Below are positions 7,001 to 63,768 of a DNA stretch of 64,000 nucleotides, piece by piece. Numbering within the stretch: the first letter of the stretch is position 1; the number at the start of each line of letters is the position of its first letter. The notes below the pieces were generated by a model. That model worked only from the letters and a program-made list of their open reading frames with translations. It had not been told where the DNA came from and searched no databases. Source of the DNA: Podarcis vaucheri (lineage: Eukaryota); NCBI GenBank assembly GCA_965113315.1, contig OZ220375.1. One strand, 5' to 3'. Made by a program: the position numbers and the translations under genes.

Positions 7001-10000
7001 GCCCACCAAGGACCACGTCTTCATCCTGGACTACAACGGCACCCTCTTCTTCCTCAAGAACGCCCTGGTCTCCTCCACCATGGGCCACATCCAGTGGCGC
7101 CGCGCCTGCCGCTACATGGTGCTCTGCCGCAGTGCCAAGGACGTAGGTGCCCGGAAGAGGAGTGAACCCCTGCGGTGTGGGGGGCGGGCTGCCTGTCCCC
7201 ACTGCTTCCCAGAGGCCGGAGCAGGGCAGGATAGGACAGGCCAGAGCCATGGCCTGGCATGGTAACTGTGGGCAGAATGCAGCCCCAGTTGAGAGGGAGG
7301 AGGAGAAGGGAGACGGACAGCCTAGGTCAGCTTCAGTTATTGCTGCCTGGATGCCTGCCTTGCACAGCTGCTTGAAGAAGCGCAGCTGGCCCCTTGGCCC
7401 CTACCCATCTTAGAGGGAGCTGCAGCGGGTGGGGTTCAGAGTATTAATGCTACACTGGAGAAAGAGAAAGGTGCATCTGCCTTGAAGGAGGCAGTGGTGG
7501 GCCAAATGCGGTCCAATAAAATTAAATTATGAAAAGGTGGAGGTGTTATGTTTTCAAGTCCAGGAGGTCCATAGCATGGGGTCTCCTGGCCCAAGTCTGT
7601 CACTGAAGGCTCAGGTGGCTAGGAGAGCCAGCGTGGTGTAGTGGTTAGGAGCAGTAGACTCGTAATCTGGTGAACCAGGTTCGCTTCCCCGCTCCTCCAC
7701 CTGCAGCTGCTGGGTGACCTTGGGCCAGTCACACTTCTCTGAAGTCTCTCAGCCCCACTCACCTCACAGAGTGTTTGTTGTGGGGGAGGAAGGGAAAGGA
7801 GAGTGTTAGCCGCTTTGAGACTCCTTAGGGTAGTGAGAAAGCGGGATATCAAATCCAAACTCCTCCTCCTCCTCTTCTTCTTCTTCTTCAATGTGAGTTC
7901 CACACTCTGGACACTTTCAGACCCTTTAGTACCACCTTTTAGGGAAAGGCGCCAGACAGTCCTGTGGCACCCTAGTTTCTTTCACCAGAAGCTGGTTGCC
8001 CCAGGGCTCTTTGTGAGAGGGGAGGGTCTTCTCTGCCACCCCTGAGTGCACAGCCCGGACTTCTTCCCCCTCTAGATCCCTGATCAGTTCCTGAAGCATC
8101 CCAGGATCTCCGGCCTCCTGACCCTGAGTGCCTCCTCCCTCCTCCTTCTTCTGCCTGCAGTTTGCCACAGACCCCCGGAGCGACACTGTGTACCGCAAGT
8201 ACCTGTACGTGCTGGCCACCCGCGAACAGCCTGTTACGGCAGCCGTGGGGCGCAGCGAGGGCTCCAGCCCAGCCGGCAGCGGGCGCCTCTGCGACTGCGT
8301 GGAGGTCTACCTGCAATCCAGCGGGCAGCGGGTGTTCAAGATGACCTTCCACTTCTCCATGAAGTTCAAGCAGATTGTGCTGGTGGGGCAGGAGACGGAG
8401 AGGTCCCTCTTGCTCCTGACAGGTGAGCCTCTGCGGGGAGAGAGAGGGGGGGGGAGTATAAACACAGCAAAATAGAATAATAGATGCCAAATAAAACAAT
8501 ACAGAAGTAGAGTAAAAGGGGGATATCTGGAGCCAAATGTATAGAGACAGAAATCCATACCAAAAATCAAACGTAATAAATTAATGTCGCAAAGTTCCAA
8601 GTAACACAAATGGCTTTACATTTTCTGGTCCCTTATTACTCCAGTACATGAGACTCCATTTCTCAACGAATATATCATATTGTTGTCTGCCCTCTCTGGT
8701 TCTTACCATGTACAGTCGTACCTTGCTTTTCGAACACCTTGCGACTCAAACGTTTTGGCTTCCGAACGCCACGAACCTGGAAGTGAGTGTTCCAGTTTGC
8801 GAATGTTTTTTGGAAGCCGAACATCTTCTGCAGCCAACTGGAAGCTGCGCCTTGGTTTTCAAACATTTTTGGAAGTCGAACGGACTTCCAGAATGGATTC
8901 CGTTCTAGAACCAAGGTATGACTGTATCTAAGCTTAACTATAAATACCACATCCCAGATTTTAGGTACCCATTCTCTCATGGACTGTATTCTCATTTTAA
9001 TTCCAGCTTTGAGAAATAATAATTCTGGCAGCAGTTAACTGCTAACAGTGGCTGCAGTTTAACAGATGCTTCACACACTGAGCCTCATTCTCACAGAGAG
9101 ATTTGCTAAAGCAGCAGTTCTCAAACTATTTAGTTTAATTCAGCAAAACAAATGAACTTGATGGTACCATTCTATTCTGCTTTGGTCATAATAGACCACA
9201 CCTGGAATATTGTGTTCAGTTTAAGAAGGATGCTGACAAGCTTGAAGGTGTGCAGAGGAGGGCGACCAAGATGATCAGGGGTCTGGAAACCCAGCCTGAT
9301 GAGGAATGGACGAGGGAGTTGGGGATGTTTAGCCTGGGGAAGAGGGGACTGAGAGGAGACATGATAGTCCTAGGCCGTATAGGGCTTTGCACGTGTGGAG
9401 GCAAGCGAATTCCGCAGTCACTTTTTGTGGGGTGTTTTGTTTCTCCCCACAGAGGAAGGGAAGATCTACAGTTTGGTGGTGAACGAGACCCAGCTGGACC
9501 AGCCGCGCTCCTACACTGTTCAGCTGGCTCTGCGCAAAGTCTCCAAGTGCCTCCCTCACATCTCTGTCCGCAACATGCACTCCAACCAGAGCAGCGCCGT
9601 CTACCTCACAGGTCAGCAGAAGGTGCCCTCCGGCCAGGCCAGTCTCTGCCCAGAGGCCGCCACAACCAATAGGGCCCAGAAACCAAGCCTTCTTATTATT
9701 ATTATTTATTACTTAATGGCGAACGGTTGAGGGACCTGGGCATGTTTCACCTGGAGAGGACAAGAACCGAGAGGGGACAGGAGAGCTACCTTCAGGTATC
9801 TGGAGCGTTGTCACACAGAAGACGGAGCAAGCGTGCTTTCTGCTGCTCCGGAGCGAAGGACCTGGGCCTATAGATCCCAACAGGACAAGAAAGGAAATTC
9901 CAACTATTGAAGCTATTTGACAGTGGGGCAGATTGCCTTGGAGCCCAGTGGACTCTCCTTCCCTGGAGGTTTTTAAGCAGAGGTTGGGTGGCTTCCTGTC

Positions 10001-13000
10001 AGGGATTCTTGAGCTGCAATTCCCGCATTGCTGGGGGGTTGGACTAGATGGCCCTACAGTGGGCTGTGCATGCTCCCAAACCTTGTGCCACTGCTATCAC
10101 TATTGGCCATTCCTCTGTCTTCATGAAGAGGCCAGGGATCACACATGGCAATGTGGTCTCCCCCCGAGAGGGCGTACAGGTGATATCAGGAAGCCCAAAC
10201 TGAGCTGAGAGAAGGCTGAGAAGTGGGGGTTTTGGGGGGGGGTGTTAGGTGGAATCAGGGATTTGGGTGGCCCTGTGGGTTAAACCACAGAGCCTAGGAC
10301 TTGCTGATCAGAAGGTCGGGGGTTCGAATCCCCGCGACGGGGTGAGCTCCCGTTGCTCGGTCCCTGCTCCTGCCAACCTAGCAGTTTGAAAGCACATCAA
10401 AGTGCAAGTAGATAAATAGGTACCACTCTGGCGGGAAGGTAAACGGCGTTTCCGTGCGCTGCTCTGGTTCGCCAGAAGCGGCTTAGTCCTGCTGGCCACG
10501 TGACTCGGAAGCTGTACGCCGGCTCCCTCGGCCAGTAAAGCGAGATGAGCTCTGCAACCCCAGAGTCTGTCACGACTGGACCTAATGGTCAGGGGTCCCT
10601 TTACCTTTACCTTAGGTGGAACCACCTGAGCTGCAAGCGGAAGGAACCGGGGGTGGGGAGGCTTTGGTTGGAGAAGGAGGGAGGCCTTACAGTTATTCGT
10701 TCCAGTAGCCCCTATTTCAGCACTGAGAAGGGGAAGCTGCATCAGAGGCAGGTTAGAAGGACCACAGATGAGTGTGGGAGAAGGCGGCAGTGGGGTGGTG
10801 AGGTGAGAAGAGCCAAGTCTGCCTGAGTAAGTGGGGCTTAAGAGGAGAGTAGCAGGAGGGCACCGTCCTGAAAGCCAGGAGCAGGAGCTTGAACCCAGTG
10901 CAAAATGCCACGGGCAGCCACTGCAGTGGGGAGCCCTCCACCCTCACAACCCCAACCTCATTGCCTGGGATTGGATTCTGCTCTGGGGGAGCCCTTCTGC
11001 CTCTGTGCAGGGCCAGGGTTCGGCCAGCAATGATCTTGCGTCTCCTCCACAGACGAGGGCACCGTCTACTTTGAGGTCCACTCGCCCGGTGTTTACCGCG
11101 ACCTCTTTGGCACCCTCCATGCGTTCGACCCGCTGGATCAGCAGATGCCCCTGGCGCTCTCCCTCCCGGCTAAGGTAACCCAGAGGTGGGGCTCTCTCCT
11201 GCTCCCCGCCCTCCCCTCTTCCACCAGGGGAGGACTTACTCGTCTTCTTCTTCTTAGTGACTTAACAACCATCCAAACAGACAGACAGGAAAAAAGCCCA
11301 CCTAGATTCAGTTGCACGCCACCCTAATCTCTGAGCGGTGCGAGATTCTAGGGGTTCCCAGTGCTTACCCAGGGACTGTGGTTCCTTTTGGAAACGAGGC
11401 ATAGCGGAGACTGCGGTGTCTTTAGGATATATGGTTTATTTAGAAATATGTATATGAACCTTTGATGGAGGGCTTCACAGCAAGAGGGTCTTGTAGCCAA
11501 TGGCATTGGATTCAAGCAGGCATCAGGCCTTGATCTCAAAAGTTGCTCTGACTTGCCTGCTTGCTGCTTTGTCTCTCTGCCACACGACTCTTGCCCCTTC
11601 TCTACGCTTGCCACATTGCTTCTCACCTCTCTCCACTAAGCTCTGGTTTCATCTGCTGAGGGAGAGGGGCCTCCCCCATTTGCCATCTCAAACGGACTCC
11701 TTTTAATCCTTTTGTTCTCTTAATGGCCCATCGCCCAGGCAGTCCCTCAACACAGGAGGAGAGCCTGGCTCAATTAGCTGTTAGCACATGCTGGATCAAG
11801 TAATTAGAAGTGTCTGGCATGCGGCTTAACACCCCAAGTCTTAAAGGAGTCTGACACTTGCTGGGTCCAGAGATGAAAGTGGTCTGACACCAACAAACAA
11901 ATCTTCACCTGGTGCCAAAACTTTGGTGGAAACCACAGAAGGAGAAAGTGCTATTGTGCTCAGGTCCTGATTGCGGGTTTCCCATTGAAGCATCTGGTTG
12001 GCTACTGTGAGAACAGGAGGCTGGATTAGGCCGGCCAGTGGTCTGATGCAGCAAGCCCTTCTTAGGCTCTTAGGGAGAGGGAACTGCACTCTGCATGTGC
12101 TCAGGAGCACCACAAGATTCAGGCTGAATATGATGGGAGTCCTACTTGAGATTAATCCCCGTGTCCTCGCTCAGGCCTTAGGTGTGGGTCAGACTCTCTC
12201 CCTTCCCCTCTCCCGCTTTGTGGCAGGTCCTCAGCTGTGCCCTTGGCTACAACCACCTGGGGCTAGTGGACGAGTTTGGGCGGATCTTCATGCAAGGAAA
12301 TAACCGCTATGGCCAGCTAGGCACAGGTGACAAGATAGACCGCGGGGAGCCTGCCCAGGTGAGAGGAGAGCAGACCATCCCTGGTGGGGTGGGAACCCTC
12401 AGAGTTCCAGGAAGCTTCTGAGCCCTTGCAGTGTCCTAGTGGCCATTACTAATTTGGGTCACCTGGCATTTTGGTCTGGGCCGAACCACCTTTATGGGCC
12501 GTGTCAAGGTCAAATCAGGCATTGCGACACAGAGTAGGAAGGTTGTCTCTTTTCAGCCTTGAGTCCCCTTCATGGGAGGTTTTTGGCGACCACCTGCCGG
12601 GGATTGTCTAGCTGGGATTCCTGCATTGCAAGGAGTCAGGCTGGATAGCACTTGGGGGTCTCTTCGAACTCTACAATTCTGTGGTTCCAGGCCCATTTCA
12701 CCTGAGCCTCTGCCAGCAACAGGAAACCTCCCTCCAGCAATCATGGTGATGGCTGCGAATCCTCAGCCACGCTCTGATACTGCTGTGCTCCCCGTTGCAG
12801 GTGCACTACCTCAAGTGCCCCATCGACCTCTGCTGCGGCCTCAACCACACGCTGGTGCTGAGCCAGAGCGGGGACTTCAGCAAGGACCTGATGGGCTGCG
12901 GCTGCGGAGCTGGAGGGCGCCTGCCCGGGTGGCCCAAAGGCAGCGCCTCTTTCGTCCGGCTGCACACCAAGGTGAGGGGGAGAGAGGTGGGGTGAGGCCA

Positions 13001-13334
13001 AAATGTGGGAAGTCAGGATCAGGGGGGTGGGCTGGGTGGGCTGCATAGCCCGTGGGTGTCTGCCGTGAAGTCTAGTCATTCCAGGCCATCTCTCCTGCCC
13101 GCTTCCTGTGTTATCCTCCGATCTTTTTCCGTACGTGGGTATTTTAGTGCGGCAGCACCTACACTCTGGAACTCCCTGCCTCTTGACATCACTGTGCCGA
13201 AAACACTTTTGTTTAGACAAGCCCACCCAGGCATGTAGAATGCCAGTTTATTTGCAGGATCCACAAAACTGCTTCAAAACCCTGGGTGTGGTTTTATCTC
13301 CTAATCCTCAGTGTCAGGGCTGGAGGGAGGGTCC

Positions 13335-13380
<46 letters not shown>

Positions 13381-14381
13381 TTATTTATACCCCACCCATC
13401 TGGCTAAGTTTCCCCAGCCACTCTGGGCAGCTCCCAGTCGAATGTTAAAAACAATACTGTACAGAATTAAATATTAAAAACTTCCCTGAACAGGGCTGCC
13501 TTCAGATGTCTTCTAAAAGTCTGGTGTAGTTGTTTTTCTCTTTGACATCTGAAGGGAGGGTGTTCCACAGGGCGGGCACCACCACCGAGAAGGCCCTCTG
13601 CCTGGTTCCCTGTAGCTTTGCTTCTTGCAGTGAGGGAACCACCAGAAGGCCCTCAGCGCTGGACCTCAGCGTCTGGGCTGGACGATGGGGGTGGAGACGC
13701 TCCTTCAGGTATACAGGACCAAGGCCATTTAGGGCTTTAAAGGTCAGCACCAACACTTTGAATTGTGCTCAGAAACGTCCCAACATCCCCATGGCATCCT
13801 CCAGAGTGCAGAGGGTTGTGTGCTGCCTCCTGGACACTGTCCCCACCCCCTAGGTGGCTTTAAAAGACAAATCCATGGTGTAGGAGGAGAAGCCCTGTGT
13901 GGCCTAGGACCCACGTACCTACGGGCCCGCCTCTCCTGGTCTGCCCCGCGGAGGACCTTAAGGTCCACAAATGACAACACCTTGGAGGTCCTAAGTTACA
14001 AGGTGGATAGGTTGGTCTCAACTAGGGCCAGGGTCTTTTCAGTACTGGCCCCGACTTGTTGGAACGCTCTGTCACAAGAGACCAGGGCCCTGCGGGACTT
14101 GACATCTTTCCGCAGGGCCTGCAAGACAGAGCTGTTCCACCTGGCCTTTGGTTTGGACTCAGTCTGACCCTTATGATTCCCTCCCCTTATGGTCTTGATC
14201 TATGGGCTACTATTAAAATAAGGCTGCATTTTAAAATACATTTTAACCTGTATTTTAAATTGGGTTTTTTTATTTTCTTCCCCCACCCCCTCTTTCCCCC
14301 CTATTATGATTTTACTGTTATTTTATTGGTGTTAGCCGCCCTGAGCCTGGCTTTGGCAGGGGAGGGCGGAGTATAAATAAA

Positions 14382-14432
<51 letters not shown>

Positions 14433-14971
14433 GGCTCCTAGCAAGGAGGTCTATTTGTTCTGCCTCCACTGTCAGAGGCAGCTGTGCCTTTGAATCCCAG
14501 TTGCTGGAAACTCTGGGAGGGGAGAGGGCTCTTGGGTTTGGATCCTGCTTGCTCATTTCCCACAGGCCTCTGGTTGGCCGCAGTGAGAACAGGATGTGGG
14601 CCTAGATCCGGCCGGGCTCTCCTTACGTCTCCCCTTTGCAGGTGCCGCCCTGTGCCCGCCGCATCTGCTCCACCCGCGAGTGCCTCTACATGCTGTCCAG
14701 CCACGACATTGAGGAAGTCCCCGCCTACCGCGAGCTGCCGGCCAGCAAGGCAGGGGTGGCGCCGAGCGACACGGAAGCCATGGCCGCCCGGGCGTGCGAG
14801 GAGTACCTGAGCCAGCTGCACAAGTGCCCGACGCTGGAGGGGCGCATGGCCAAGATGAAGGAAGCCGTCGGCAGCATGCCCCTCATGACCTTCCAGAAGG
14901 ACTTCTTCTGGGAGGCTCTGGACATGATCCAGCGGGCGGCGGAAATCCAGGAAGCCCCTGCGCCCAGCTAG
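4042..14971 (+). CDS. FBXO24: F-box only protein 24 (F-box plus RCC1-like repeat), about 601 aa
   Basis: Exons 4042(or 4060)-4146, 5430-5528, 6479-6665, 6904-7142, 8161-8422, 9453-9611, 11053-11174, 12227-12358, 12801-12971, 14642-14971. All introns are GT-AG with matching phases (1806 nt total). Peptides [66 protein letters not shown] and [11 protein letters not shown] match FBXO24. The first exon is the least certain. Confidence 0.93.
5712..6330 (+). mobile_element. L2-clade LINE 3' fragment inserted into an older CR1-derived fragment
   Basis: [35 protein letters not shown]...[12 protein letters not shown], the L2 ORF2 C-terminus, then an AT-rich tail. CR1-like sequence flanks both sides (about 5580-5710 and 6331-6385). 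Confidence 0.85.
7622..7889 (+). mobile_element. tRNA-derived squamate SINE (Squam3-like)
   Basis: A-box-like TGGTGTAGTGG, B-box-like GGTTCGCTTCCC, CORE-like body, (CTC/TTC)n tail. Minus-strand copies at about 53470-53715 and 58305-58537. Confidence 0.75.
8713..8924. mobile_element. Tc1/mariner-pogo (Tigger-like) MITE
   Basis: TA|CAGTCGTACCTTG...CAAGGTATGACTG|TA terminal inverted repeats with TA target duplication. Confidence 0.8.
9150..9370 (+). mobile_element. CR1 LINE fragment
   Basis: [13 protein letters not shown]...[18 protein letters not shown] is a typical CR1 ORF2 C-terminal peptide. A further CR1 piece lies at about 9720-10040. Confidence 0.75.
10265..10614 (+). mobile_element. 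Sauria SINE
   Basis: GGTTCGAATCCC B-box, diagnostic body (GTGAGCTCCCGTTGCTCGGTCCC...GCAAGTAGATAAATAGGTACC), (ACCTTT)n tail. Confidence 0.9.
11377..11895 (-). mobile_element. Probable solo LTR
   Basis: TG...CA termini on the minus strand, TATA-like TTAAAAG near 11700 and AATAAA near 11435. No clean TSD seen. Confidence 0.4.
13335..13775 (-). mobile_element. L2 LINE 3' fragment with (TAA)n tail
   Basis: [20 protein letters not shown]...[15 protein letters not shown] peptide. Same family as 5712-6330. Confidence 0.85.
13893..14430 (+). mobile_element. L2 LINE 3' fragment (second subfamily) with (TTA)n tail
   Basis: [11 protein letters not shown]...[17 protein letters not shown]...[10 protein letters not shown] peptide, AT-rich 3' UTR, microsatellite tail. 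Confidence 0.75.
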
Positions 14972-18752: not shown

Positions 18753-21119
18753 ATTTGTACCCCGCCCTGGCTGGCTGGCTGGCTGGCTGCCTTAAGAACA
18801 CATAAGAGCCTGCTGGGTCCAAAGAGAGCCTGGCCAGTCCCGCCTCCTGTCCTCACACGGGCCAACCAGATGCAAGCTGGACCTGACCACAAGAGCACCC
18901 CCCCCTCCCGGCATTCAGAATCATGGCTGCCCCTGATCTTGGAGCGCAGCCATCATGGCGTGTGGCCATGGACTGCCTTCTCCTCCTTTTGTCTAATCCT
19001 CTTTTAAAGCCGTGCATGTGACTGCCTCTTGTGGGAGTGAGTTCCACTGGCTCCTGAACTGAGCCAAGAAGGAGCAAAAGCCTAGTAGAGACCACCATGG
19101 CTATATGGTGGGGGAAGAAAGGGACTCTGTGCAAGGTTTTCTGGGGGGGGGACGGGGGAGTACTCTTCATATGATCTCAAATTACATGCTGTTTTCGCTC
19201 TGTTTTGCTCAGTGTAGTCTTATCTGAGCCCTGGACCCTGTCTGCTAAGAGCAAGGTCTGGTTCTCTAGGTGAGAGCTGGACCTTTTCACACTTGCAACG
19301 TGTTTTGGAGTGACAAGCCCCGTGTGGAGGATTTGCAATGCTGGCTGTGGGCAGAGGGTGAGCCCTGCTGCATCGCCTGCAGTCAGGGCTCCCGGCAGGC
19401 TACTGTTTGGACTCTGAGATGCAAATAATCCCTTGCCAGGAAACCAGTTCCCCTTGGGGCAGCTGGAGAGGGGGTGAAGGAGGAGGCTCCTGAGGAAGGA
19501 TCTGAGCATGAAGCGTAGGGCTTTGAGAGATCAGGAGGCCACCTCCTCCCTCCCTCCCTCCCTCCCTCTCTGCTCATTTCTCAGACAAGCCCCACCAGCA
19601 AAGAAAACCCACTTTCGGAAATTTAGCCACTCAAACCAGAGAAGGATGGGATGGGGAGGATAAAGTAGTTGGATAAACTGGGTGCTGTGGGGGTGGTACA
19701 ATGCTTCTGCCCCCCCCCCCCTTGCAGGCCCTGTTGCTGCCCTTTGCCCTGCCTGCTTTCTCTCCCTGCTACCAGCAGCTGAAGTCCAGCATTGCAGTGA
19801 CCTTAATTTATACCAGCACTTGTTGGGGAGATGTTGTGGGGGGAGGTAGAGAAAGAAAGAAAGAGGGAAAGCGCCCTTTCTGCCCAAAAGAACAGGGAGA
19901 GGCAGAGCTCATCCCCCCCCCCCAACTTTTCCATCCTGCAGAGTGACCCCCCCACCACACCACCCTGGGAGCCGGCCTTTGGAGGCAGCAGCTGAAGTTT
20001 CCACTGGGGCTATTTTTGCTGCTGCTGCTGCTTCCCCACGTCCGCACACATTAAAAAACAAACAAAGCAAAACTATTTTTGCGCCCTTAAACTCAACACA
20101 GCTTCACGTGCAGATGGAATATATTTAGGGATGAGTGGAACCTTTTCTGGAGTTGCTCTGAGCCTGGGAATCAGGCAGGTGCCAGAATCAGAGAGATACC
20201 CTGCTCTGGAGAGGCTGGGGCAGGTGGGGCAGGGCCCCTAGGTCAGGAGAGGCTTCTGAAATCATTTATGCAGCCGCCGCTGCTGCCGTTGTTACTTGTC
20301 TTGCAAGAGTGCAGAGACTGGGGTAAAGTACAAAAATTAGATGCACCCGATAGCCCTCTAAGCACCCAAGGGAGTTGTTGCCAGCCAGGCCACCTCCATA
20401 AAAAGAGCCTGCTGGATCAGGTGAAGGGCCCACGTGGTGCAGTATCCTGCTCTCACAGGGCCCCCCCAGATGCCCCAAGGGGAAACCAGCAAGAGCCGCT
20501 CTCCCCTCCTGCGGTTTCCAGCACCTCCTCTTTGGAAGCCTTGCTCCCTCTGACTGTGGAAGCAAAACATAGTCCTCATAGCTAGTCGCCCTCTCTTCCC
20601 TAATCCTCCTTTAAAGCCATCCAACTTGGAGGCCATCACTTCTTCTTGGGGGAGCGAGTTCAAGACCTTAGACTCCAAACTTCCATAAGCAGGTAGGCTG
20701 AGAACTTGGGACCCCTGCGATCCTGGCTCCCGGCAGGAGTTGGGCCAGGGGGGACCGAAAGCAGAACCAAGAGTTGTCAGCCTTCATACCTGGCCAGGAG
20801 GCTGCCGCCGCTCCTTCCCTAGCCACCCTAAGGATCCAGACCCCCAGGTTTACCACCCCAGCTGCTTCCCAGACAGCACCTCCCACCCCGGACTGACACA
20901 GGATTGCTGCCTGACACCTCTCCCAGCAGGTAGAAGAATGGAAAACTACCCCTGCAGGACTTTGAATTTGCCTGTAGGAAAAATAAACCCGGAGCCCACA
21001 ATCTCTGGCCTTTCAAGTTGCACCTGCACAGCTCCCCCAAGATCCTGTTTGCCAGGTCCAAGAAACCGCATGGAGTTATCTGCAAGGGACACCTAATTTG
21101 GTTCAAGTCACATCTTCCT

Positions 21120-21125
21120 TTTATT
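21120..21125 (-). terminator. Candidate polyadenylation signal of the PAQR9-like gene
   Basis: TTTATT (AATAAA on minus) about 140 nt downstream of the stop codon. Confidence 0.5.
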
Positions 21126-21265
21126 TCAAGCTTCTCCGTTCCCCCTCCCCACCCCAGAGTTAAATCCAGTGTGAGTGCTAGACACAGCGACTGTTTTCCA
21201 GTTTTCAGCAGTGCGTGGCATCCCTTGCGCCTCGCCCAGAAGCCATGCAAATGAGCCGGTGCGCC

Positions 21266-22393
21266 TCAGTCCCCTTTCCTGGCCTTGCTCCGCTGGTGGC
21301 TGGCGTAAGCCCTGAGCCCGAACCAGCCCACGATGCTGGCGAGCAGTGTCAGCAGCAGCAGCATCACGCCAAAGGTGGAGAGGAAAGTGGGCGCCCTGGG
21401 CAGGAGGGGCAGCCCGGCGCCCAGCTCACGGATCTCCCCCCGGATCATGTGCAGCTCGTCCAGGATGCTCATGAAGGTGCAGCAGTGGAACCACTGGTGG
21501 CTGTGGCCCCAGATGTCGAACTTCCCCGGGCTGAAGCGCTCGGGGATCTTGCTGACGTTGAAGATCCCGGAGGCCAGGAGCCAGAAGCAGTGGCGCAGGA
21601 AGAAGCGGCCCGTGCCGTGCCCGCCGGCAGCACCGCCCCCGCCCCACCACAGCTTGCGGAAGACGGGGATGGAGACCACCCCAAAGGGCAGCAGGAAGAC
21701 CAGCGTGCGGATGAGGTAGCGGTAGCGCGGCCACTGGTGGCGGGTGCTGCAGCAGGCCAGGGTGCAGAAGAGAGCGATCAGGCAAGCGCTGGGCACATAG
21801 AGGGCCTCAAACCACGTGCCCACCTGGCCCGCCAAGACAGAGAGCCAGCCAGCACCCTCCCAGCTGGGCCAGGCGCTGGGAGAGGAGAAGTTGTTGCCTG
21901 GTAGCGGTGGTGGTGGAGATCCGCCTCCCCTGGGGTGGATGTAGTAGAAGTAGGCCAAGGAGGAGCCCACGGTGTAGGCGCTGATGGTGCCGTAGTCGAT
22001 GTAGAAGCAGATCTCCCGGATGACCAGCGACATGGAATTGAAGAGGTGCGCCATGCTGCTCGCCACCAGCAGGCCACAGACCCCCAGGAAGTAGCTCCAG
22101 AGCGGGTAGTAGAAGGGGTCCAGGGGGCCTTGGGGCACCGCGGGGCCCTCGCCCCAGAACTGCTCCAGGAAGTGGAAGGCGAAGACAAAGACGGCCAGGA
22201 AGTGCGTCCAGAAGTTGCCCGTCTCGTTGGTGGGCCGGAAGGCCGAGACCAGGCACTGGGCAAAGGTGTAGCCCGGGCAGCGGTAGCCGCTCAGGATGAA
22301 GCTCTCCGTCATGCTGGGGGGCACTTCGCTCCAGTGCAGGAGCAGGCCCCCTCCCTTGCCGGGGGCAAGGGGCACCTGGGGCCCCCTGCCCAT
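21266..22393 (-). CDS. PAQR9-like (membrane progestin receptor epsilon-like / CREST family) multi-pass membrane protein, 375 aa, intronless CDS
   Basis: LLHWSEVP...FILSGYR...PTNETGNFWTHF, SSMAH, FYIDY, ACC..R, FNVSKIPERFSPGKFDIWGHSHQWFH and APTF motifs, plus multiple hydrophobic helices. Closest to PAQR9 but clearly diverged from it. Strong GC3 codon bias. Confidence 0.9.
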   Translation of the reverse strand: MGRGPQVPLAPGKGGGLLLHWSEVPPSMTESFILSGYRCPGYTFAQCLVSAFRPTNETGNFWTHFLAVFVFAFHFLEQFWGEGPAVPQGPLDPFYYPLWSYFLGVCGLLVASSMAHLFNSMSLVIREICFYIDYGTISAYTVGSSLAYFYYIHPRGGGSPPPPLPGNNFSSPSAWPSWEGAGWLSVLAGQVGTWFEALYVPSACLIALFCTLACCSTRHQWPRYRYLIRTLVFLLPFGVVSIPVFRKLWWGGGGAAGGHGTGRFFLRHCFWLLASGIFNVSKIPERFSPGKFDIWGHSHQWFHCCTFMSILDELHMIRGEIRELGAGLPLLPRAPTFLSTFGVMLLLLTLLASIVGWFGLRAYASHQRSKARKGD

Positions 22394-22949
22394 GGGTGGC
22401 CCTGCTGACCTTCTCCCTTCACAGCGGCTATAGGGGGCAGGAGTGGGGAGTCAGCCCCAGCCTGTAGCTCCGGCTTTTCTGGCCACGGAAGGAGACACTG
22501 CAGAAGGGGGTTCGCTCAGCTGAGCACCCAGCCCCACGCCTCCCGGCCTGTCACTCCAGATCCCCGCCACCCTCGGCGATGCTGGGTGCGGGGAGCAAGA
22601 GGAGAGGGAGAGCGCAGATTTCAAAGGCGGAGCTGCTGGCTTTTTGCTGGGGAGGGGGGCGGCGAGGATGCGGCTGCTTTAGCGGTTGCCATGGAGAGCC
22701 TGCCTCCGCTCCGCCATCTGCCCCAGTGGAGTGGGGGGGGGGTTGGGGAGGGGGAGCCCACAGAATGACTGCGGAGGGGGGGCTTAAAATCTGCGGAGAC
22801 TGCAGAGGTGCATTTGCAGGCGTCCCCTCCGTCTTCTGGAGCGCAACGATGTCCTACATAAAAATACCTGCTAAAATCACGGGGGGGGGCGCCTCTTCTT
22901 TCAAGCCTCCCTCTTCCACCGGGGAAAATCTGCAACCGGGAGCTGGCCT

Positions 22950-23330
22950 GCGGGCGCGGGCCCCGCCGCCTCTGGCTGCCGGAGGAGCGCGGGAGCCGGC
23001 GACGCGGCCGGGCTGCTGGGCGTCGTGGGCTGGCGCGGGCGCCCTTGCCGGGATCCGCAGGAGGGCGCGCGGCCAAGGCGCTGCTTTTATCTCCGCCCCG
23101 CCCGCCCGGACGGCCTCCCGCCGCCCCAGGCCCGGGTCCAAGCCCCGCCCCGGCCCGCATCCGCGCAGGCGAGGCGCAAGGCGGCAGGTGCCGTCTCCGC
23201 CAACCGTGCGCCCTGCTGCCCCAAGTCGCTGGGCGCCCCTCTCCAACCCACGGAGGAAGAAAAGGCACGGAGCAAACGGCGGCGGGGGGGTGGATCCCAA
23301 AGTGGCGGAGAGCAGGGCAGCTGTTTGGGG
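22950..23330 (-). promoter_or_regulatory. CpG-island promoter of the PAQR9-like gene
   Basis: Very high CpG. TATA-like GATAAAAG on the minus strand at about 23084-23091. GC boxes (CCCCGCCC) at about 23096 and 23143. Candidate 5'UTR intron 22498-22867 (CAG|GTATTT ... CCTTCTGCAG). Confidence 0.6.
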
Positions 23331-24452
23331 CGAGGTTAACGGATAATAATAGACTGTGGTTTGTGGGTTCCTGCCCCATATTGGGTGAAGCTTCCCTGCA
23401 TTGCAGGGTTGGACTAAATGACCCCTGGCTCCCTCCCGACTCTCTCATTCCGACCTTGGTTTGAAACTTCTGCAAGGCCAACGGAAGGGGGAACTTTTTA
23501 AAAGAAATTACCAATCTCCCCAGCAGGAACAACAGAGCCCCGAGCCAGCCTGGCCTCCTGCGCGCAAGGAGCTCAAGGCGCGCATCTCTCCCTGGGTGTG
23601 ACCTTGGGGGGGCGGTCCCTGCCTTCTCTCAGCCCCCCGTACCTGGCTCGCGGGGCTGTTGTGGGGACTGAATGGGGGGGGCGAGGAGAACCAGGCACGT
23701 CGCCACCTGGAGCTTGGAGGGAAAGGAGGGATATCCGAGCCACAAGCAAGGTGGGCGGAAGGGGGGTCGGGTTAGGGCTGCAGCGTGGAGGCCCCGGAGA
23801 GCTCCGTGGGTCCCTGGGATGCGCGGGAAGGGTGATAAGTGGGAGCCTCCGCAGCCTCGATGGGGCAAGAAGAGGGCAGAAGCCATGGGTGGCGAGGACC
23901 TCCCCACATCCTCCTCCGGAGCTGCGTCTTCGGTGCAGACCGAGAGAAAGAGGCGGAGGGCGAGGCGCTGCGCCACCCGCCAGGCAGAGACTGTGCGCTC
24001 AGGGTGGAGGCGCCTCCGGGTCTTGGGAAAGCTCTCCCCACCTCTGTTCGTGGGGTTCAGTGCGAGAGCTTTGGGCCCCCTCGCACATGGGTGCTACTTC
24101 GGGGTCTTTCCCAGAGTCAACAAGCCGGCCCACGTCCTCGTGCCTCCGCTGGGAACCCCACGGCTACGCCTTTCTCAGATGCCTTTGCCACCCTCGGGCA
24201 ACCGAGGAACCGCCATGGATAGGACGAGCCAAGGAAACGCGCAAGAAGAGCTCCAGCAGCAGCAGCAGCTGGGTCAGGCCCATAAAATGGCAGTCCGGGT
24301 CATCTAGGGAATCCTCCGGTTCTCATAGCTGCCGACCAGGTGCTTCCAGAGCTTGTGGGCTGCCCTGAAGCGCAACGGTGACGGGCCCTGGCTTAGACGG
24401 GCATTTGAAAGGGCATCGCGGTGCCAGTCCCACGAGGAGGTGAGGTCTCTAT

Positions 24453-24647
24453 GTGGAAGCAGGCAGAGGGCCTTCTCGGTGGTGGCGCCCGCCCTGTGGA
24501 ACGCCCTCCCACCAGATGTCAAAGAAATGAACAACTATCTGACTTCTAGAAGACATCTGAAGGCAGCCCTGTACAGGGAAGCTTTTCATGTTTGATGAAT
24601 TATTGTATTGTAATATTTTGCTGGAATTATTATTATTATTATTGTTA

Positions 24648-24692
<45 letters not shown>
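24453..24692 (+). mobile_element. L2 LINE 3' end with (TTA)n tail
   Basis: [24 protein letters not shown]...HLKAALYREAF peptide. Confidence 0.8.
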
Positions 24693-24693
<1 letters not shown>

Positions 24694-25644
24694 CTCCTCT
24701 ACCCTCGCTAGACTTCTTTCTAGCGGTCACCGTGAGAACTGGACGCTGGACTAGATTCCCCCCTCCACTTCGATCCCCTTGATGTGGGGCCGCGGCGATA
24801 TCAGCCTGGCCTGCCCCACCGCGTCTCTCCTGCCCATCTCCTCCGGGCTATTTTTAGGCACATCTCCCACGGAGGACTTCGGGTCCCGGCGCAAGGATGG
24901 GACGGCCTGACCTTGCAGACGGACGTGGCCACCTGCTCCTCCCAGGCCTGGCTCGGGGGTCGCTCGGGGACAGGCGCCGAGACGCGGGGGGGGGGGGGGG
25001 CGGCGAGAGAGGAAGGCCAGGCGCTTTCTCTGCAACGAAACCTCCCTTTCCCCCGCAGTCCCGCTTGCGGACACAAGGCGGCGCCCACGACCCACTTTGC
25101 AAATAGGCACCACCTGAGAAGACCTAAATTGGAAGGCAGGTGATGATGGAGAGCTGGAAGCGGCAATGAAACGGGGCGGGGAGGACGAGGAGGAGCCAGG
25201 ACGCCTGGGTTCCCTCATCAAGGTGGTGTGTGTGGTCCCAGTAGATTAGAACAGGTAGAATTATAGTAGCGTTGGAAGGGACCACGAGGGTCATCTAGTC
25301 CAACCCCCTGCCGTGCAGGACCCTTTGGCCCAACGTAGGACTCGAACCCACAGCCCTGAGAGTAGGGATCTCGTGCTTTCCCGACTGAGCTTTCCCAGAG
25401 CAGGAATAGCGTAGGGCTAGAGTTGTGGTCAGAGTATTGGCCTGGGAGAGAGGTCAGCGTTCAGCACCCGCCTCAACTTCTCCACAAAGCTCATTGGGTG
25501 TGACTGTGAAGGCCCGTCACGCTGCCTCGCAGGGTCATTGTGGAGACTAAATGAGGAGAGGGAGAAGGACCTTGAGATCTTTGAAAAAAAAGTGGGAGAT
25601 CAGGGAGGCAATGGTGGTCGCTGGGTGGGTATTCATGCTTTGTG

Positions 25645-26185
25645 ATGCAGCAGCAAAAAAAGCTAATGCTATTCTAGGCGGCACCAAAAGAAGTGGCCAA
25701 TGAAGAGAAGTTGCAGTACCACTCTATTCTGCCTCCGTCAGACTATTCTCGGAGTCCTGTATCCAGTTCTGGGCACCCCAGTTTAAGCAAGTGTGCAGAG
25801 GAAGGCGCCAGGATGATCAGGGCCTGGAAACCAAGCCTTGTGAGGAACAGTTGAGGGAACTGGGTGTGTTTAGCCTGGAAAAGAGGAGGAGATATAAGAG
25901 CCACCTTCAAATATCCAAAGGGGCGTCCCGTGGAAGATGGAGCAGGCTTGTTTTCAGCTGCTCTAGAGCGCAGGACCCGAAGCCACGGCTTCACACTGCA
26001 GGAAGGGAGATTCCGACTAAACCTCAGGAAGAACTTTAGAAGCCATTTGACAGTGGGAAGACGGCGGACTCGCCTTTCCTGGTGGCTTTGAAGCAGAGGC
26101 TGAATGGCCACTTGTCAGGGGTTCTGGCGCTGTGACTCTTGCACTGCAGGAAACCCTTGGGTCTCTTCCAACTCCAAAATCTCTA
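25645..26185 (+). mobile_element. Degenerate CR1 LINE 3' fragment
   Basis: [23 protein letters not shown] and [22 protein letters not shown] peptides, CR1-like 3' end. Confidence 0.75.
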
Positions 26186-27992: not shown

Positions 27993-30900
27993 TCAGGTCC
28001 TGTTCCTGGCAGCTGGCGGGGCGGTACAGGGGCGCTTGGCGAGGTTGGTGAGGATTTTGTGCTGCGGTTGGCGGAAGGGCACCACGAAGCTGGTGGGGGG
28101 GAGCTGCCCGCTCCTGTCTGCGCCAACTTTGCCCATGAAGACGTAGTTGGCACCTGCAAGGGGAAAAGGAATGGTGTTATGTACTGAGTTGAATAGGATC
28201 CAAATTGCAGCAGTCTGATTGGTCCTAGAACAATAGGACCCAGAATGCAGCAGTCTGATTGGTCCTCAGGAGCCACCCAATCCAGCTCCAGGCGGAAAGG
28301 AATCCGAAACCTGATTGGCCTACAGGAGAATCCCGGAATTAGCCAATCACATTTATTGTGTACATAATGTATATAAAGCAGACATTCTGGGGGAACGTCC
28401 ATTCCTCCTCACCACTATGAGCTGAATAAAGAGCATGAAATCCACTCGACTCTGAGTATATTTCAAATACAGTGGACACTTGGGTTGAGAACGTGATCCT
28501 TGCGGGAGGCACATTCGCAACCCACAGCGTCCACAACAAGCAGGGCCGCGTCTGAGCATGTGCTGGTTGCGATTCGGTTCTTCTGCGCATGCGCAAAGCA
28601 CAATTTAGCGCTTCTGTGCATGCGCCGAAACCTGGAAGTAACCCATTCCAGTACTTCCGGTTTTCGGCGCGTCCGTAACCCAAAAATGCGCAACCTGAAG
28701 CGTCTGTAACCCAAGGTATGACTGTAATACATGGAGCCCCTGGGAGAGGAGGCTGGGTGGGCCTCAGCTGGCCGGCTGGGTGGGAGCCCCTTCACGTAGG
28801 CCCAGAACTGATGGCAGAGGGAGCCCACTCGTTTCCTGCTGCCCCACAGGGTAAGACTCGAACCCGCACCTCCAAATTGCAAGGAAGGAGATTCCCACTA
28901 AACATAGAGTTACAATGCCCTCACAAGGTGGTGGTTTCTCCTAGCTTGGAGGCTTTTAAGCAAAGGTTGGGTGGGCATCTGCCAGGCCTTCTCTAGCAGT
29001 GATTCCTGAAGGCGTGGCGGGGGCTGGACTGGATGACCCTCGGGGGTCCCATCCTACAGTTGTATGATCTCAAGGAGCTCTCTCGCCCCTCTGCACAGTT
29101 TGCGTAAGGAAACAGCGGAAGGAGCTGGTGTGGGGGTGAAAGGACACGTGAGGGGTGAGTGTGGGGGTCTCTCACCTTTCTTGAGGATGGGGCACTGCCG
29201 GCAGGGGGCCTCAAAGCGAAGGGGGGCTGCGCTGCCCTCGGCGGGGAGACTCAGGGCTCCTGCCTTGTACGTATTCGCGAGGACGACGGTGATGGTAACC
29301 TTGTTCCCTGCCCCTCGCACGGCCGTCTTCACTGTCCCAGAGATCACTGCAAAAGCGGCGTCGGAGGGTGAGGGGCTGCCAGAACGGAGGAGGACCCCTC
29401 CCAGGTTTGAGTCAGAGCAGCCGGCGGTTCCCAAAAATTCCTGGAGGACCCCCACCACCTTCGTCCCAGGATCTCGTTCCCATTGCCCCCTACCCAAAAT
29501 GCTATAAAAGGCATTATTCAGCAGTGGCGTAGCGTGGGTTGTCAGCACCCGGGGCAAGACAAGTAATTTGCGCCCCCTAACCCATGGATTTGCGCCCCCG
29601 AACCCTAACCCCCAGATGTTGCGCTTGGTGCGGCCAGCCCCCCCTGCACCCCCCATGCTATGCAACTGTTATTCAGAACAGCAGTTTGCTGCACCCGACT
29701 TATCAAAACACTTGCAATTAACCACACATTCGTTCAAAACCCAGTTAAAACTAATTAACTCCATAAAACTGATGACCAAAACTTAATAGTCATTGGCACC
29801 TCAAGCGCCCCCCTGCTGCCTGCTTGCCGTTCGCACCCCCTATGTAATTCCACCGCACCCCAGGGGGTAGGACCACTGATCTAAGAGGCTATGGGGTCTC
29901 ACTCCAGGGACATTTGGGGCTCATTCTGATTGACAGCTCACCCCCAGCCACTTCTCTTCTGCCCCCCTCCTCCCGGCTGCCCAGTTTCATTTCCAGGAGC
30001 TGGCAGAACGAGGGTGTGCACATTTCCCCACTTCCCCCCCCTGCACCTGTTCAAATGGGGGTTGGAATAGATGACCTTTGGGGGTCCCTTTTCATCATGA
30101 TTCTACGATGCCCCCTCCCGCTTTCCTCAAGGGCTCACCAAAATCGCTGGCGCAGAAGTTGCTCTGGAGCGTTCCTGTCCGGCGGCACTTGTCTGGGCAG
30201 GTGATCTCACCTGGGTGGTGGTGGGGGGGGGGAGAAATGGAGGGGAAGAGTAGAATTGAGACAAACCCTCCAACCAGCACTCTGCACATGCTCAGGAGCA
30301 CGTTCTCAATGTCACCTGCAGCAGGGCAGCTTAGGAAACTTTTACCTTGCTTCCTGCTTGGGCATTCAGAACACACATTATTCATTGAATAATATAAAGG
30401 ATGTGGACAATTTTGTGGATAAGTCTGAAGAACGGCGACTACCAAAACCACAGATTGGACTCTAGCAAACTATACTAGATTGATCTGTCCCGGAGGGAAA
30501 GAAATGGGGATTTTGTTTTTTGTATCCTTCTCCTTCTTTGTTTTTTGGTAATTGTTATATATTGGAAATCAATAAAACTATATTTATTTTACAAATAACA
30601 CATGCCAGGAGAGAGGCCTGGTAGCCCCAGGGGAGCCTGGCCTGCTGCAGACCATGGACAGTGGGGCTTTTTAGCTTGGAGAAAATGTGAACAAGAAGCG
30701 ACACAATAGAAACTTATAAAAATTATGCCAGGCCGGGAGAAAGTGTGGAGAGGAAAGTTTTTCTCCCTCTCTCATAGCACTGGAAATCATGGACATCCAA
30801 TGCAACGGAATGCTGGGACATTCAGGACCGATAAAAGAAAGTTAAACTGCGGAACTCCCTGCCACAGTAGACAGGGATGGCGACCATCATGGATGGCTTC

Positions 30901-33900
30901 CAAAGAAGATGAGACAAATCCATGGAGTAGAAGGGGGTTCTCCCCCCCCCCCAAAAAAAAAATTATTGCTTTCCCTGCAAATCCAAGAACAACATATTCC
31001 TACAGTAACTTGCCCAGCACTGCATTCTTGTTAAGTTTCACCTGAAGTACACAGTATGCATAGCTTCCAACATTGATCCAAGTAAAATAGGGACAGCGTG
31101 TCCAAGGAAAATCAGAATATTCAGGGATCATATCAGGAACCCGGGACAGCTTCTGTGAATCTGGGGCTGTCCCTGGAAAATAGGGACACTGGGAGGGTTT
31201 GCAGTACACAAGCAATGCATTTATTCATGCATTGTCGATATTTATAAAGGAAAAGAATTGGGGCGAAGTCTCACCCAAAGTGCCGACCCCTGAGTTGCTT
31301 TCCGTGGCAAGGGAGGCGTTCCGGTGGAGCCACATTCCAAATATTATTTAACCGGATTTCAAGGGGGATTTCTATGGATTGTTTGCCAAGCTGGGCTCGG
31401 AGAGGATTGGCCTTGTGCTCCGATCCTGCTTGCGGGTTTCACAACTGTGAGGACACTGGACTAGATGAGCCATTTTGGGCCTGATCCGGCAGCCAGGCTC
31501 TTCCAGTGTCCTTATGGAGCTCCAGCTCCAGAGGCAGTCTACCTCGACCCCTAGGTCCTGAGGGTTATTTGGCCACCGTGGGCCAAAGGAAGCTCTGGCC
31601 GGATCCTGACACACAGACACCGCGGTGATCCCGTCCGCAGATGCCTCTTACCTGTGGCAGGTGGTGCCGTGGGCCGTGTGGGGCTGGGGCGGGGCCTGGC
31701 GGTCGGTCTGGGGCGCGGTGCCGGCTTGGGCTTGGGGGCCACTGGCTTCCTGCCCGGCTGGGCTGGTTTGGAGCCCGGGAAGACGCGTCCCGTGGGCTGA
31801 GAGACGCCTTTGTCCACCGCCTCGCCGGGGCTCTTGAAGACGTAGGAAGCCGAGAAACCGTCGGCCGTCACGCTGAGATCCGAGACGAACTGGACCAGCA
31901 GTTCATTGCCATTTGAGGAGACGGTGCTAGATGACCGCAGGGAGAGGGAAGGAATTGAGAAGAGCAGAGAAGTCCCTCCCTAGCCCTACTCTAACGTCCT
32001 GGAAGCCACATTTAGGTTTCCAGGTGGGACGGCAAAAACCTCCAGGTCTCCTCTGTCTCTGAGATGCTTCTGGTTCCACGCAGAGGACCAGGCAGGCAGG
32101 TGAGGCTTGGTGGCCTCAAGGCGGGCAGGAGAAGACGGTGTGTCAAGACGAGGGGCTTGGATTTGGGAGGAACCAGGATTCCTCGAATCGTAGACTTGGA
32201 AGGGACCCCGAGGGTCATCCAGCCCAACCCGCTGCAAGGCAGAAGTATTCCGCTACCCGCATACAGGGATCAAACCTGTGGCCTTGGCATCATAGCCCCG
32301 CTGTCCGCTAACTAATTGAGCTGCCCAGGTGGCAGAGCAGCTTTGAGGCTGGTTGCTTGGGGGAAAGCCGGTTCAGAAGGGATCTCCCCCCCAGGCATGA
32401 GCACAGAGATGGTGGCTTTAAAAGAGGAGGAGGCAAATTATTGGAAGAGGAGGAGAGGGCGAGGGATGGCTCGAAGCGGCAGGCTCTGCTGATGTTCTTA
32501 CGAATACGATGAAATAGACAAAGAAATTAAATGGAGGAGGCGTAGAAGGAGGCCCTGTGAGGCCAGGGGCAGTTCAGGGAGGCCAAAGGCGATGGGGGAG
32601 AGAGATTATTTGCCAAAGCAGGCGAAAGGGAATGCTTGGTCTTAGAGGACGTGGGAATGACCTGGGGAAGGGAGAGAGCCAGTGGGAGGTCCTTATATGT
32701 GGGTGTAAACCAGGGGTTGGCAAACCAAGGCCCAGGGGCCGGATGCAGCGCCCCAGGCTCATAAATCCGGCCCACAGACCCTGCTGCGCGCTCGGTCAGT
32801 CCCCACACGCTGCAGACCCCTCTCTGTGCAGGGACTGACTGCCATCATGACGGGGGTGTCGTGGAGCCTCAGCCGGAGTTTGGCGCACCTGCTGACCCCG
32901 CACCTGGTGCCCGGGTTGGCGCTGCTACTGGTGGCATGCTCGGCAGCCGCGCTGGAGCAGCTGGAGGGTGAGCTGCACGCCGCCTGCCTGGTCCTCTGCA
33001 TGCGCAGCCTGCCCACTGACCCGGCCTCAGACAATGGGCTGCAGCGTGTGGTGCAGCTGTGGGACCGGTTTGGAGGGTATTCATATTTTTCAAAATATAG
33101 TCCGGCCCCCCACAAGGTCTGAGGGACAGTGGAGCGGCCCCCTGATGAAAAAGTTTGCTGACCCCTGGTGTAAACTCTCCAGAAACGACGGGGAAGGGTC
33201 ACCGAGGGCAGGGGGTCCAGAGAGCAAAAATCCCCCCATGGGGCAGACTGCCCTGCAAGCTTGTTATACTGAGCCCCAAGAGGACGAGGGACATGCATTT
33301 GTCACTGAAATGCTCTGGGGATCTTGAGATGAGCGCGAAACGGACTCCCCTTCCTTGGAGGTTTTTGAGCAGAGCTTGGCGTGTTGCGGGTGCTTCTGTT
33401 GCGATTCCTGCAGGGCAGGGGGTTGGGCTGGATGACCTCGGAGGTCCCTCCCTACCCTACAATCCTATATTTCAAGGAAGCATCCCAAAGAGGAGACACG
33501 CTGAAGCAATGGAGGACTGCAACCACCCTTAAGCTGGCTGCCAACGTGCTCCAGTCGCGACAGAAAGGGAAATTTGTGCGCTGCAAAGCCTCACCTGGGC
33601 GATTCGTCCCCGCAGAACTTGCCAATGCGCCTGGAGTCGTCTCGGTCTCCGCCGTTGAAAACGGCCACGTAGTCGTAGCGACAGTAGGTGTCGGGCTCCA
33701 CGTCAAACTTCCCGAAGGTCAAGACAATCACCTGAGCCAGGGGGGAAAGGAGAGGGAATCAGTTCCCGTTGCGCCGGTGCGCATGGCCTGACTCATAAGC
33801 TTTGCAGGCAGAGAATGGAGGTGGTTGCTGGGTGCCACCCCACCCACTGCCCTAGGAAGAGAGGCCCCGCCGGAGGAAGCCGGCAAGAAACACAGAACTG

Positions 33901-35871: not shown

Positions 35872-35934
<63 letters not shown>

Positions 35935-39390: not shown

Positions 39391-39799
39391 TGAGAGAGGG
39401 GCGGCTGCGGGGGGGGGAGAGAGGGAGGGAGACACGTGGAGGGACCCCCCCAAAACAAATGGGGGGGCTTGGTCAGTGACCCCTCTGCCCCTCCGCAGCA
39501 GCCAGCCAGGAGCTACTGTCTAGCCTGCCACTCGGGGCAGAGACCTAGGCAGCCCCTGGGGGGGGGGGCGCGGGGGGAATCGGGGGTCCAGGAGCTGAGA
39601 GGGGGCTTGCTGCACCACCACCTTCTCTCTCTCTCCTGGCCTCCTAAGAGCCCGGCTGGATCAGGCCCGTCCAGTACAGCCTCCTGTCCTCACAGTGGCC
39701 AACCAGATGCCCCAATGGGGAACCCACAAACAGGATCCGAGCAAAAGAGCAACTCTTCCCTCCTGCAGTTTCCAGCAACTGGAGTTCAGAAGCGTTGCT

Positions 39800-40172
39800 C
39801 CTTGTCCTGAATGACTCCCTGGTTCTGAATGGGGTAACTGTGCCCCCGAAGGACCAGGTGCGCAGCCTGGGAGTCATTCTGGACTCACAGCTGTCCATGG
39901 AGGCACAGGTCAATTCCGTGTCCAGGGCAGCTGTCCGCCAGCTCCATCTGGTACGCAGGATGAGACCCTCCCTGCCCGCGGACTGTCTGGCCAGAGTGGT
40001 GCATGCTCTGGTTATCTCCCACTTGGACTACTGCCATGCGCTCTACGTGGGGCTACCTTTGAAGGTGACCCGGAAACTGCAACTAATCCAGAATGCGGCA
40101 GCTAGACTGGTGACTGGGAGCGGCCACCGAGACCACATAACACCGGTCCTGAGAGATCTGCATTGGCTCCCA
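39800..40172 (+). mobile_element. L2 LINE internal fragment preceded by a CR1-derived piece (from 39645)
   Basis: LNGVTVPPKDQVRSLGVILDSQLSMEAQVNSVSR...LHWLP peptide. Confidence 0.85.

Positions 40173-46265: not shown

Positions 46266-63768
<17,503 letters not shown>

Follow-up and report, generated by a model that had tools for sequence, protein, structure and literature searches.

The DNA analyzed here is a 64,000-nt stretch of the genome of the lizard Podarcis vaucheri (assembly GCA_965113315.1, contig OZ220375.1), which we call the window. It carries an open reading frame (ORF) for a PAQR-family protein at 21266 to 22393 on the minus strand, next to a gene of the PCOLCE family. A first reading made from the letters alone (the sequence-only reading) had taken this ORF for the whole-genome-duplication sister of PAQR9, the epsilon type of membrane progestin receptor (mPR), retained in lizards and lost in mammals. 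Our analysis favors, with a probability of about 0.8, a functional gene for a sixth vertebrate mPR-type PAQR that is an ancient sister of PAQR9. Hereafter, e1 denotes the PAQR9 (mPR epsilon) group and e2 the epsilon-like group that contains the window ORF.

A single-exon PAQR gene in the Podarcis window

The e2 coding sequence reads from ATG to stop without interruption in a single exon and encodes 375 amino acids (aa), as had been proposed from the letters; the ORF list, Pfam, and an AlphaFold2 (AF2) model agree on it. The translation matches the HlyIII family (PF03006) with an E value of 2e-32 and 113 bits, against a cutoff of 26.2, and the match spans residues 52 to 309 and profile positions 1 to 219 of 224. 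The locus is GC-rich and holds many overlapping ORFs, and the family match was found in the frame of 21266 to 22393 alone.

The CREST/PAQR motifs announced by the sequence-only reading are all in place, namely, NETGNFWTH (residues 56 to 64), SSMAH (112 to 116), YIDYG (131 to 135), and HSHQWFH (297 to 303). The His3-Ser-Asp set (ExxNxxxH, SxxxH, D, and HxxxH) is complete, and the Asp of YIDY aligns with D208 of AdipoR1, the position mutated in 6KRZ (D208A). These key residues of the zinc site are invariant in 56 epsilon-type proteins (29 e2, 25 e1, and 2 cyclostome sequences).

The gene itself is 66% GC, with a GC fraction of 0.91 at third codon positions. A GC- and CpG-rich region (21250 to 24500, no strand assigned; GC 0.64 to 0.72) covers the gene and its upstream side, and the observed/expected CpG ratio in 2-kb bins is 0.63 at 22001 to 24000 and 0.61 at 24001 to 26000, which agrees with the CpG island claimed before. 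The claimed poly(A) signal was also found: an AATAAA at 21120 to 21125 on the minus strand, 140 nt past the stop codon. The claim of a TATA-like box held in part. In a pattern scan, TATAWA was absent within 900 nt upstream of the ATG, and the only TATA-like candidate upstream of the gene was GATAAAAG at about 23090.

Two epsilon-type genes coexist in the same genomes

A word-based search with the window ORF returned as best match a Podarcis muralis protein named "membrane progesterone receptor epsilon-like" (P0001, 97% identity). The "epsilon-like" proteins of other squamates share 71 to 82% identity with the window ORF, salamander proteins 63 to 65%, lungfish and coelacanth proteins 61%, and a caecilian protein 56%. 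Proteins of sturgeon, bichir, gar, and two sharks reach 58 to 59%, and all teleost "epsilon/paqr9" entries 52 to 57%. Among the 120 best matches, there was none from a mammal, bird, turtle, or frog. In an exhaustive search of representatives, the window ORF fell into a 50% cluster represented by gar "PAQR9." Lamprey "epsilon" (44%), Heteronotia binoei "epsilon" (42%), and rodent PAQR9 (40%) ranked next among full-length representatives.

The "epsilon" protein of the gecko H. binoei, used as a query in turn, recovered squamates, turtles, birds, mammals, frogs, caecilians, Pleurodeles, and Protopterus, which represent the true PAQR9 group. After this group, the score fell sharply, to gar "PAQR9" at 39%. 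Both an "epsilon" and an "epsilon-like" protein are present in at least 10 species (Podarcis, Heteronotia, Sceloporus, Pogona, Salvator, Rhineura, Anolis sagrei, Phrynocephalus, Pleurodeles, and Protopterus). In P. muralis, the true PAQR9 (P0288) lies on a 101.8-Mb contig and the epsilon-like gene (P0001) on a 59.6-Mb contig. Conversely, protein searches, which cover predicted proteins, found no e1 in sharks, ray-finned fishes, or coelacanth, and e2 is absent from the annotated or assembled proteins of mammals, birds, turtles, and frogs.

Pairwise comparison gave the same division: the window ORF is 59% identical to zebrafish paqr9 and 39% identical to Podarcis PAQR9, and primate PAQR9 is 38% identical to zebrafish paqr9. 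This bears on the idea that the window ORF is PAQR9 itself, translocated, or a recent retrocopy confined to lizards. A coding sequence in one exon and the NCBI name "epsilon-like" would suit such an origin; human PAQR9 has an intronless coding sequence as well. Yet a true PAQR9 sits separately in the same genomes, the ORF is closer to the zebrafish protein than to the PAQR9 of its own genus, and orthologues extend from sharks to salamanders. We rejected this candidate on the coexisting PAQR9 and on the tree described below, and we give it next to no credence.

The searches also changed the scope of the original proposal. Retention in lizards and loss in mammals were supported, but the gene is not confined to lizards: its orthologues extend to amphibians, lungfish, coelacanth, ray-finned fishes, and sharks. 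Nor is it new to the databases, since NCBI and UniProt list it under the name "membrane progesterone receptor epsilon-like." It is no extra gene special to reptiles, as every sampled fish "paqr9" belongs to its clade. In searches of the open literature, we came across no paper in which a second epsilon paralogue is named or analyzed and no analysis of PAQR ohnologues.

The window ORF groups with fish "paqr9" outside the PAQR9 clade

The final tree was computed with IQ-TREE under LG+C20+F+G4 with posterior mean site frequencies (PMSF) from 67 rows and 386 columns, and support is given as ultrafast bootstrap (UFBoot)/Shimodaira-Hasegawa-like approximate likelihood ratio test (SH-aLRT). Left out of it were the e1 rows of platypus, Pleurodeles, and Sceloporus, which had an odd composition and had jumped into the birds in a quick tree, together with 10 long unnamed representatives, one bird gamma, and one hemichordate sequence.

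The e2 clade, including the window ORF, received 100/99, with members from sharks, ray-finned fishes, coelacanth, lungfish, salamanders, a caecilian, and squamates. The e1 clade, with human-type, bird, and lizard PAQR9, likewise received 100/99; its members come from lungfish and tetrapods only, and the window ORF lies outside it. The epsilon total group was recovered at 100/99, the cyclostome sequences were sister to e1 (99/93), and delta paired with gamma outside the epsilon group, the gamma and delta types being the nearest outgroups. On these sequences, we assign the window gene to the mPR class of the PAQR family, together with fish "paqr9" and not in the PAQR9 orthologue group. The naming of fish "paqr9" as orthologue of human PAQR9 is not supported by the tree, in which it shares the 100/99 clade with the lizard gene (52 to 59% identity).

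Within the epsilon group (100/99), e2 and the PAQR9 of tetrapods are sister clades with the same HlyIII domain and a similar length, and share the motifs N-E-T-x-N-F-W-T-H, S-x-x-A-H, D-Y, and H-S-H-Q-x-F-H. The window ORF is nevertheless just 37 to 39% identical to PAQR9, and fixed differences between e2 and e1 stand next to the zinc ligands: NETG versus NETL, SSxAH versus SCTAH, DYG versus DYA, and HQWFH versus HQLFH. In some squamate pairs, e2 diverges faster than PAQR9 (Podarcis-Pogona, 66% versus 90%; Heteronotia-Pogona, 68% versus 85%), whereas three other pairs are similar. Lizards keep e1 besides e2, unlike the sampled fishes, in which e1 was not found. In the quick tree, two unnamed, long-branched sequences from Logan assemblies (P0130 and P0137) paired with each other (99) inside the epsilon total group and outside e1 and e2; they may represent one more lineage of epsilon type or come from outside the vertebrates.

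In a rival history, e1 arose from e2 by a late duplication in the lungfish-tetrapod ancestor and then evolved fast, so that the lizard gene would be the conserved parental copy and the direct orthologue of a single ancestral PAQR9. Such an origin would need no losses to account for e1 in lungfish and tetrapods only, and it fits the long stem branch of e1 (1.02). When e1 and sarcopterygian e2 were constrained as one clade, however, the log-likelihood (lnL) fell by 61.3 units and the approximately unbiased (AU) test rejected the constraint (P = 0.005). The grouping of cyclostomes with e1 also speaks against a late origin. When gnathostome e1 and e2 were constrained together without the cyclostomes, the cost was 9.2 lnL units (AU test, P = 0.029), which is only marginally worse; a duplication before the cyclostome split would therefore have marginal backing from these sequences.

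Each epsilon paralogue appears to adjoin its own PCOLCE-family gene

We next consider the surroundings of the ORF. Exons of the neighboring genes were searched singly, with no spliced models. Upstream of the PAQR gene on the same minus strand lies a PCOLCE-type gene with two CUB domains and an NTR domain, whose approximate exon-wise extent is 27996 to 37392. The exons of the first CUB domain fall within the ORFs 36988 to 37392 and 36341 to 36805, those of the second within 33929 to 34321 and 33594 to 33758, and those of the NTR domain within 30098 to 30469, 29057 to 29668, and 27996 to 28265 (all minus). Pfam CUB matched in the four CUB exon ORFs with E values from 1e-6 to 1e-16, and Pfam NTR in the last exon ORF with 0.017; no Pfam match was obtained in the NTR exon ORFs 30098 to 30469 and 29057 to 29668. 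Against solved structures, the second exon of the first CUB domain matched human PCPE-1 (6FZV; E = 7e-52, about 65% identity over 83 residues), and an NTR exon matched the PCPE-1 NTR structure 1UAP (E = 1e-11). From the last PCOLCE-type exon to the PAQR start codon, the distance is about 5.6 kb. The adjacency of PAQR and PCOLCE claimed by the sequence-only reading is thus confirmed, with a CUB-CUB-NTR gene as the neighbor.

On the other side, at approximately 6461 to 14968 on the plus strand, is a gene with an F-box exon and RCC1 repeats, the architecture of FBXO24. Pfam gave F-box-like at 5e-10 (6461 to 7162), RCC1 at 8e-7 (12182 to 12418), and RCC1_2 at 0.005 (12750 to 12992). The identity with PCPE-1 and this FBXO24-type gene suggest that the neighbor is PCOLCE rather than PCOLCE2. 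On human chromosome 7q22, FBXO24 and MOSPD3 flank PCOLCE, and the order LRCH4-FBXO24-PCOLCE-MOSPD3-TFR2 there is not known to include a PAQR gene. Regions 3q and 7q22 share the paralogue pairs PCOLCE2/PCOLCE, TFRC/TFR2, and LRCH3/LRCH4.

For the surroundings of PAQR9 and its namesakes, we relied on a published survey. Human and mouse PAQR9 lie among PCOLCE2, U2SURP, TRPC1, and PLOD2, and the Japanese lamprey gene lies among pcolce2, ergic3, and trpc1, with mfi2 nearby (Ren et al. 2019, PMC6604198). The zebrafish order is dthd1, pcolceb, paqr9, ankrd46b, and per1b, which has no gene in common with human 3q23 except the PCOLCE-family member pcolceb, and epsilon is stated there to be single-copy in all species (Ren et al. 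2019, PMC6604198). The adjacency of zebrafish pcolceb and paqr9 matches the PCOLCE-type neighbor in the lizard window. The PCOLCE2, U2SURP, and TRPC1 setting of PAQR9 was not seen in the window; e2 lies on another chromosome, between PCOLCE-type and FBXO24-type neighbors, and the two genes coexist in the same genomes. By gene content, each epsilon paralogue appears to adjoin a different member of the PCOLCE pair.

Such a pairing would be expected from a block or whole-genome duplication. After a late duplication of a single gene, it would be a coincidence, with e1 happening to land next to PCOLCE2, whose paralogue adjoins e2. Moreover, the lamprey gene already lies beside pcolce2 and trpc1. 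With the constraint tests above, a late origin of e1 is unlikely. We therefore return to e2 as an ancient sister of PAQR9, for which the separate PAQR9 in lizards, the tree, and the AU test argue together. The duplication would be older than the split of sharks and bony vertebrates and would most likely belong to a block or whole-genome duplication that also gave PCOLCE and PCOLCE2. Subsequently, e1 would have stayed beside PCOLCE2 and TRPC1 and e2 beside PCOLCE, and e2 would have been kept in cartilaginous and ray-finned fishes (as paqr9), coelacanth, lungfish, salamanders, caecilians, and squamates. From paired synteny and the tree, we regard the whole-genome-duplication origin as probable, not proven.

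The protein is predicted to have an AdipoR fold with a complete zinc site

AF2, run with an alignment of 44 sequences, returned a model with a predicted local distance difference test (pLDDT) score of 85.6 and a predicted template modeling (pTM) score of 0.86. The model has seven core helices and an eighth helix at residues 338 to 374, after the HxxxH helix, with a long disordered loop between helices 3 and 4 (residues ~153 to 181). The zinc-site motifs are also invariant in the 44-sequence alignment, which includes gamma and delta types.

In a Foldseek search, AdipoR1 and AdipoR2 were the sole matches with E < 0.001 (E, 1e-9; TM-score, 0.74 to 0.83, normalized to the target), and the same two adiponectin receptors are the nearest solved structures by sequence (E down to 2e-15). 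AdipoR1 and AdipoR2 (PAQR1/2) are the only PAQR proteins with solved structures. The window protein, at about 22% identity to them, is predicted to have the same seven-helix core and the same zinc ligands (three His and Asp, with Ser); the C-terminal helix 338 to 374 and the long loop are extra in its model. Eight helices have been described for PAQR5-9 (2026 review, PMC13562381). Together with the position in the tree, the predicted eighth helix places the window PAQR in the mPR class (PAQR5-9), and we model it as an eight-helix protein of AdipoR fold with a complete His3-Ser-Asp zinc site.

The gene is under constraint and may be expressed

A GC-rich region with many overlapping spurious ORFs of 100 to 300 aa could hold a long frame intact by chance, or a decaying relic that is no longer expressed. 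In line with that, none of the runs on record as RNA holds the PAQR gene. The sequence comparisons point the other way. Library contigs from related species were mapped to 5,901 nt of the window (19900 to 25800). The best-covered relative showed 17 synonymous versus 8 non-synonymous substitutions (a partial list), which, over 272 synonymous and 853 non-synonymous sites (N/S, 3.14), gives a rough ratio of non-synonymous to synonymous rates (dN/dS) of ~0.15 against this one relative, an approximate value from that partial list. In three relatives, insertions total multiples of three and fall in the loop, modeled with low confidence, that joins helices 3 and 4. Besides this excess of synonymous changes and the in-frame indels, the Pfam match, the identity of 97% to P. 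muralis and of 71 to 82% across squamates, the invariant zinc-site residues, and the confident fold all contradict a chance or decaying ORF, which we hold to be very improbable. Judged by these alignments, the e2 gene is intact and constrained.

Contigs of three libraries (X15, X17, and X20), which are small and guessed to be RNA, outline a transcript-like unit at 21101 to 22957 on the minus strand. X15 covers 21146 to 22957, X17 covers 21101 to 22359, and X20 covers 21194 to 22210. Contig depth is zero at 20688 to 21081 and at 23052 to 23248, and the other covered places within 19900 to 25800 are high-copy repeats. One X17 contig stops at 21101, some 20 nt past the AATAAA. The coverage and this contig end fit an unspliced mRNA of about 1.9 kb, with a capture library as the alternative.

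The high-copy dispersed repeats lie at 20294 to 20687, just downstream of PAQR, and at 24431 to 24627, 25219 to 25415, and 25613 to 25800, between PAQR and PCOLCE. They showed very high contig depth and many loose ends in all four runs. An (AAT)n-type microsatellite is found near 24600 to 24700.

Other features of the window

The gene order in the window is FBXO24-type (plus), PAQR (minus), PCOLCE-type (minus), then a MOSPD3-like region and a gene with FHA-like exons. The PAQR and PCOLCE-type genes are both opposite in strand to the FBXO24-type gene. Human FBXO24 and PCOLCE are on the same strand, and the contrast would point to a lineage in which PAQR and PCOLCE were inverted locally as a pair.

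The ORF 41869 to 42426 (plus) in the MOSPD3-like region has a hydrophobic C-terminal part; a Pfam search of this single ORF gave no match to the MSP domain. TFR2 was looked for to the right of this region and was not seen in the window. What follows there instead is the gene with the FHA-like exons: from 47909 to 54724 (minus), exon-like ORFs resemble the FHA domain and following region of a kinesin-3-type motor, for example, 54452 to 54724, 52842 to 53147 (a weak Pfam FHA match, E = 0.02), 50987 to 51232, and 47909 to 48688 (260 aa). At the other end of the window, the translation of the ORF 102 to 686 (minus) looks like the beginning of a leucine-rich-repeat protein, which would suit an LRCH4-type first exon upstream of FBXO24; Pfam gave no match in this putative exon. 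Three repeat ORFs, at 5674 to 6072 (plus), 39648 to 40175 (plus), and 55755 to 56249 (minus), have long near-identical peptide stretches in common and are probably the 3' part of a retrotransposon, lying partly within introns of the neighboring genes.

Points that weigh against an ancient e2

Several points count against the reading of e2 as a functional gene and ancient sister of PAQR9. An ancient origin needs about three independent losses of e1, and a late origin needs none. Long branches lead to e1 and to the cyclostomes, so that e1 could be drawn out of e2 by long-branch attraction, and the AU test has the same model bias. The internal order of e2 departs from the species tree, with squamates sister to all the rest. 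The absences of e2 come from annotated or assembled proteins, and such GC-rich genes are often missed in bird assemblies. As for synteny, the evidence outside the window comes from one paper with gene names by best hits, and the call of PCOLCE over PCOLCE2 from ~65% identity to PCPE-1 in one exon and an FBXO24-type neighbor. The libraries X15, X17, and X20 were taken as RNA by guess, and no ligand-binding or enzymatic data were found for any e2 protein beyond the zebrafish knockout phenotypes.

Possible function of e2 and what the finding means

The sole functional data attributable to e2 are those from zebrafish paqr9 knockouts, in which oocyte maturation was delayed when several genes were knocked out together and chorion elevation was reduced; a recent review lists these phenotypes and those of mouse PAQR9 under one entry (2026 review, PMC13562381). 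By analogy with other mPRs, e2 would act as a progestin-responsive membrane protein, and it may signal via lipid hydrolysis at its zinc site. We infer a role in oocyte or egg physiology, for which the zebrafish knockouts, not lizard evidence, provide the lead. A wider picture is tentative, and we put it at somewhat below an even chance: ancestral vertebrates would have had six mPR genes, with e2 as a receptor or lipid hydrolase of distinct function that serves the physiology of the oocyte or egg and was lost independently in mammals, the turtle-bird lineage, and frogs. All work on fish "paqr9," including the zebrafish knockout with its defect in chorion elevation, would then describe e2 and say nothing direct about human PAQR9.

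Research on the mPRs concerns their mediation of rapid steroid action in reproduction, in the brain, and in metabolism. Five members, alpha to epsilon, are currently recognized, with epsilon taken as single-copy in all vertebrates (Ren et al. 2019, PMC6604198). The finding corrects the history and naming of a gene family; it does not bring a new type of molecule. Should fish paqr9 and the "epsilon-like" genes of squamates and amphibians indeed be a separate ancient paralogue, zebrafish paqr9 would be no model for human PAQR9, and loss in mammals would have removed a receptor still present in most other vertebrate lineages. Lizards, salamanders, and lungfish, which have both genes, would then be natural systems for comparing e1 and e2.

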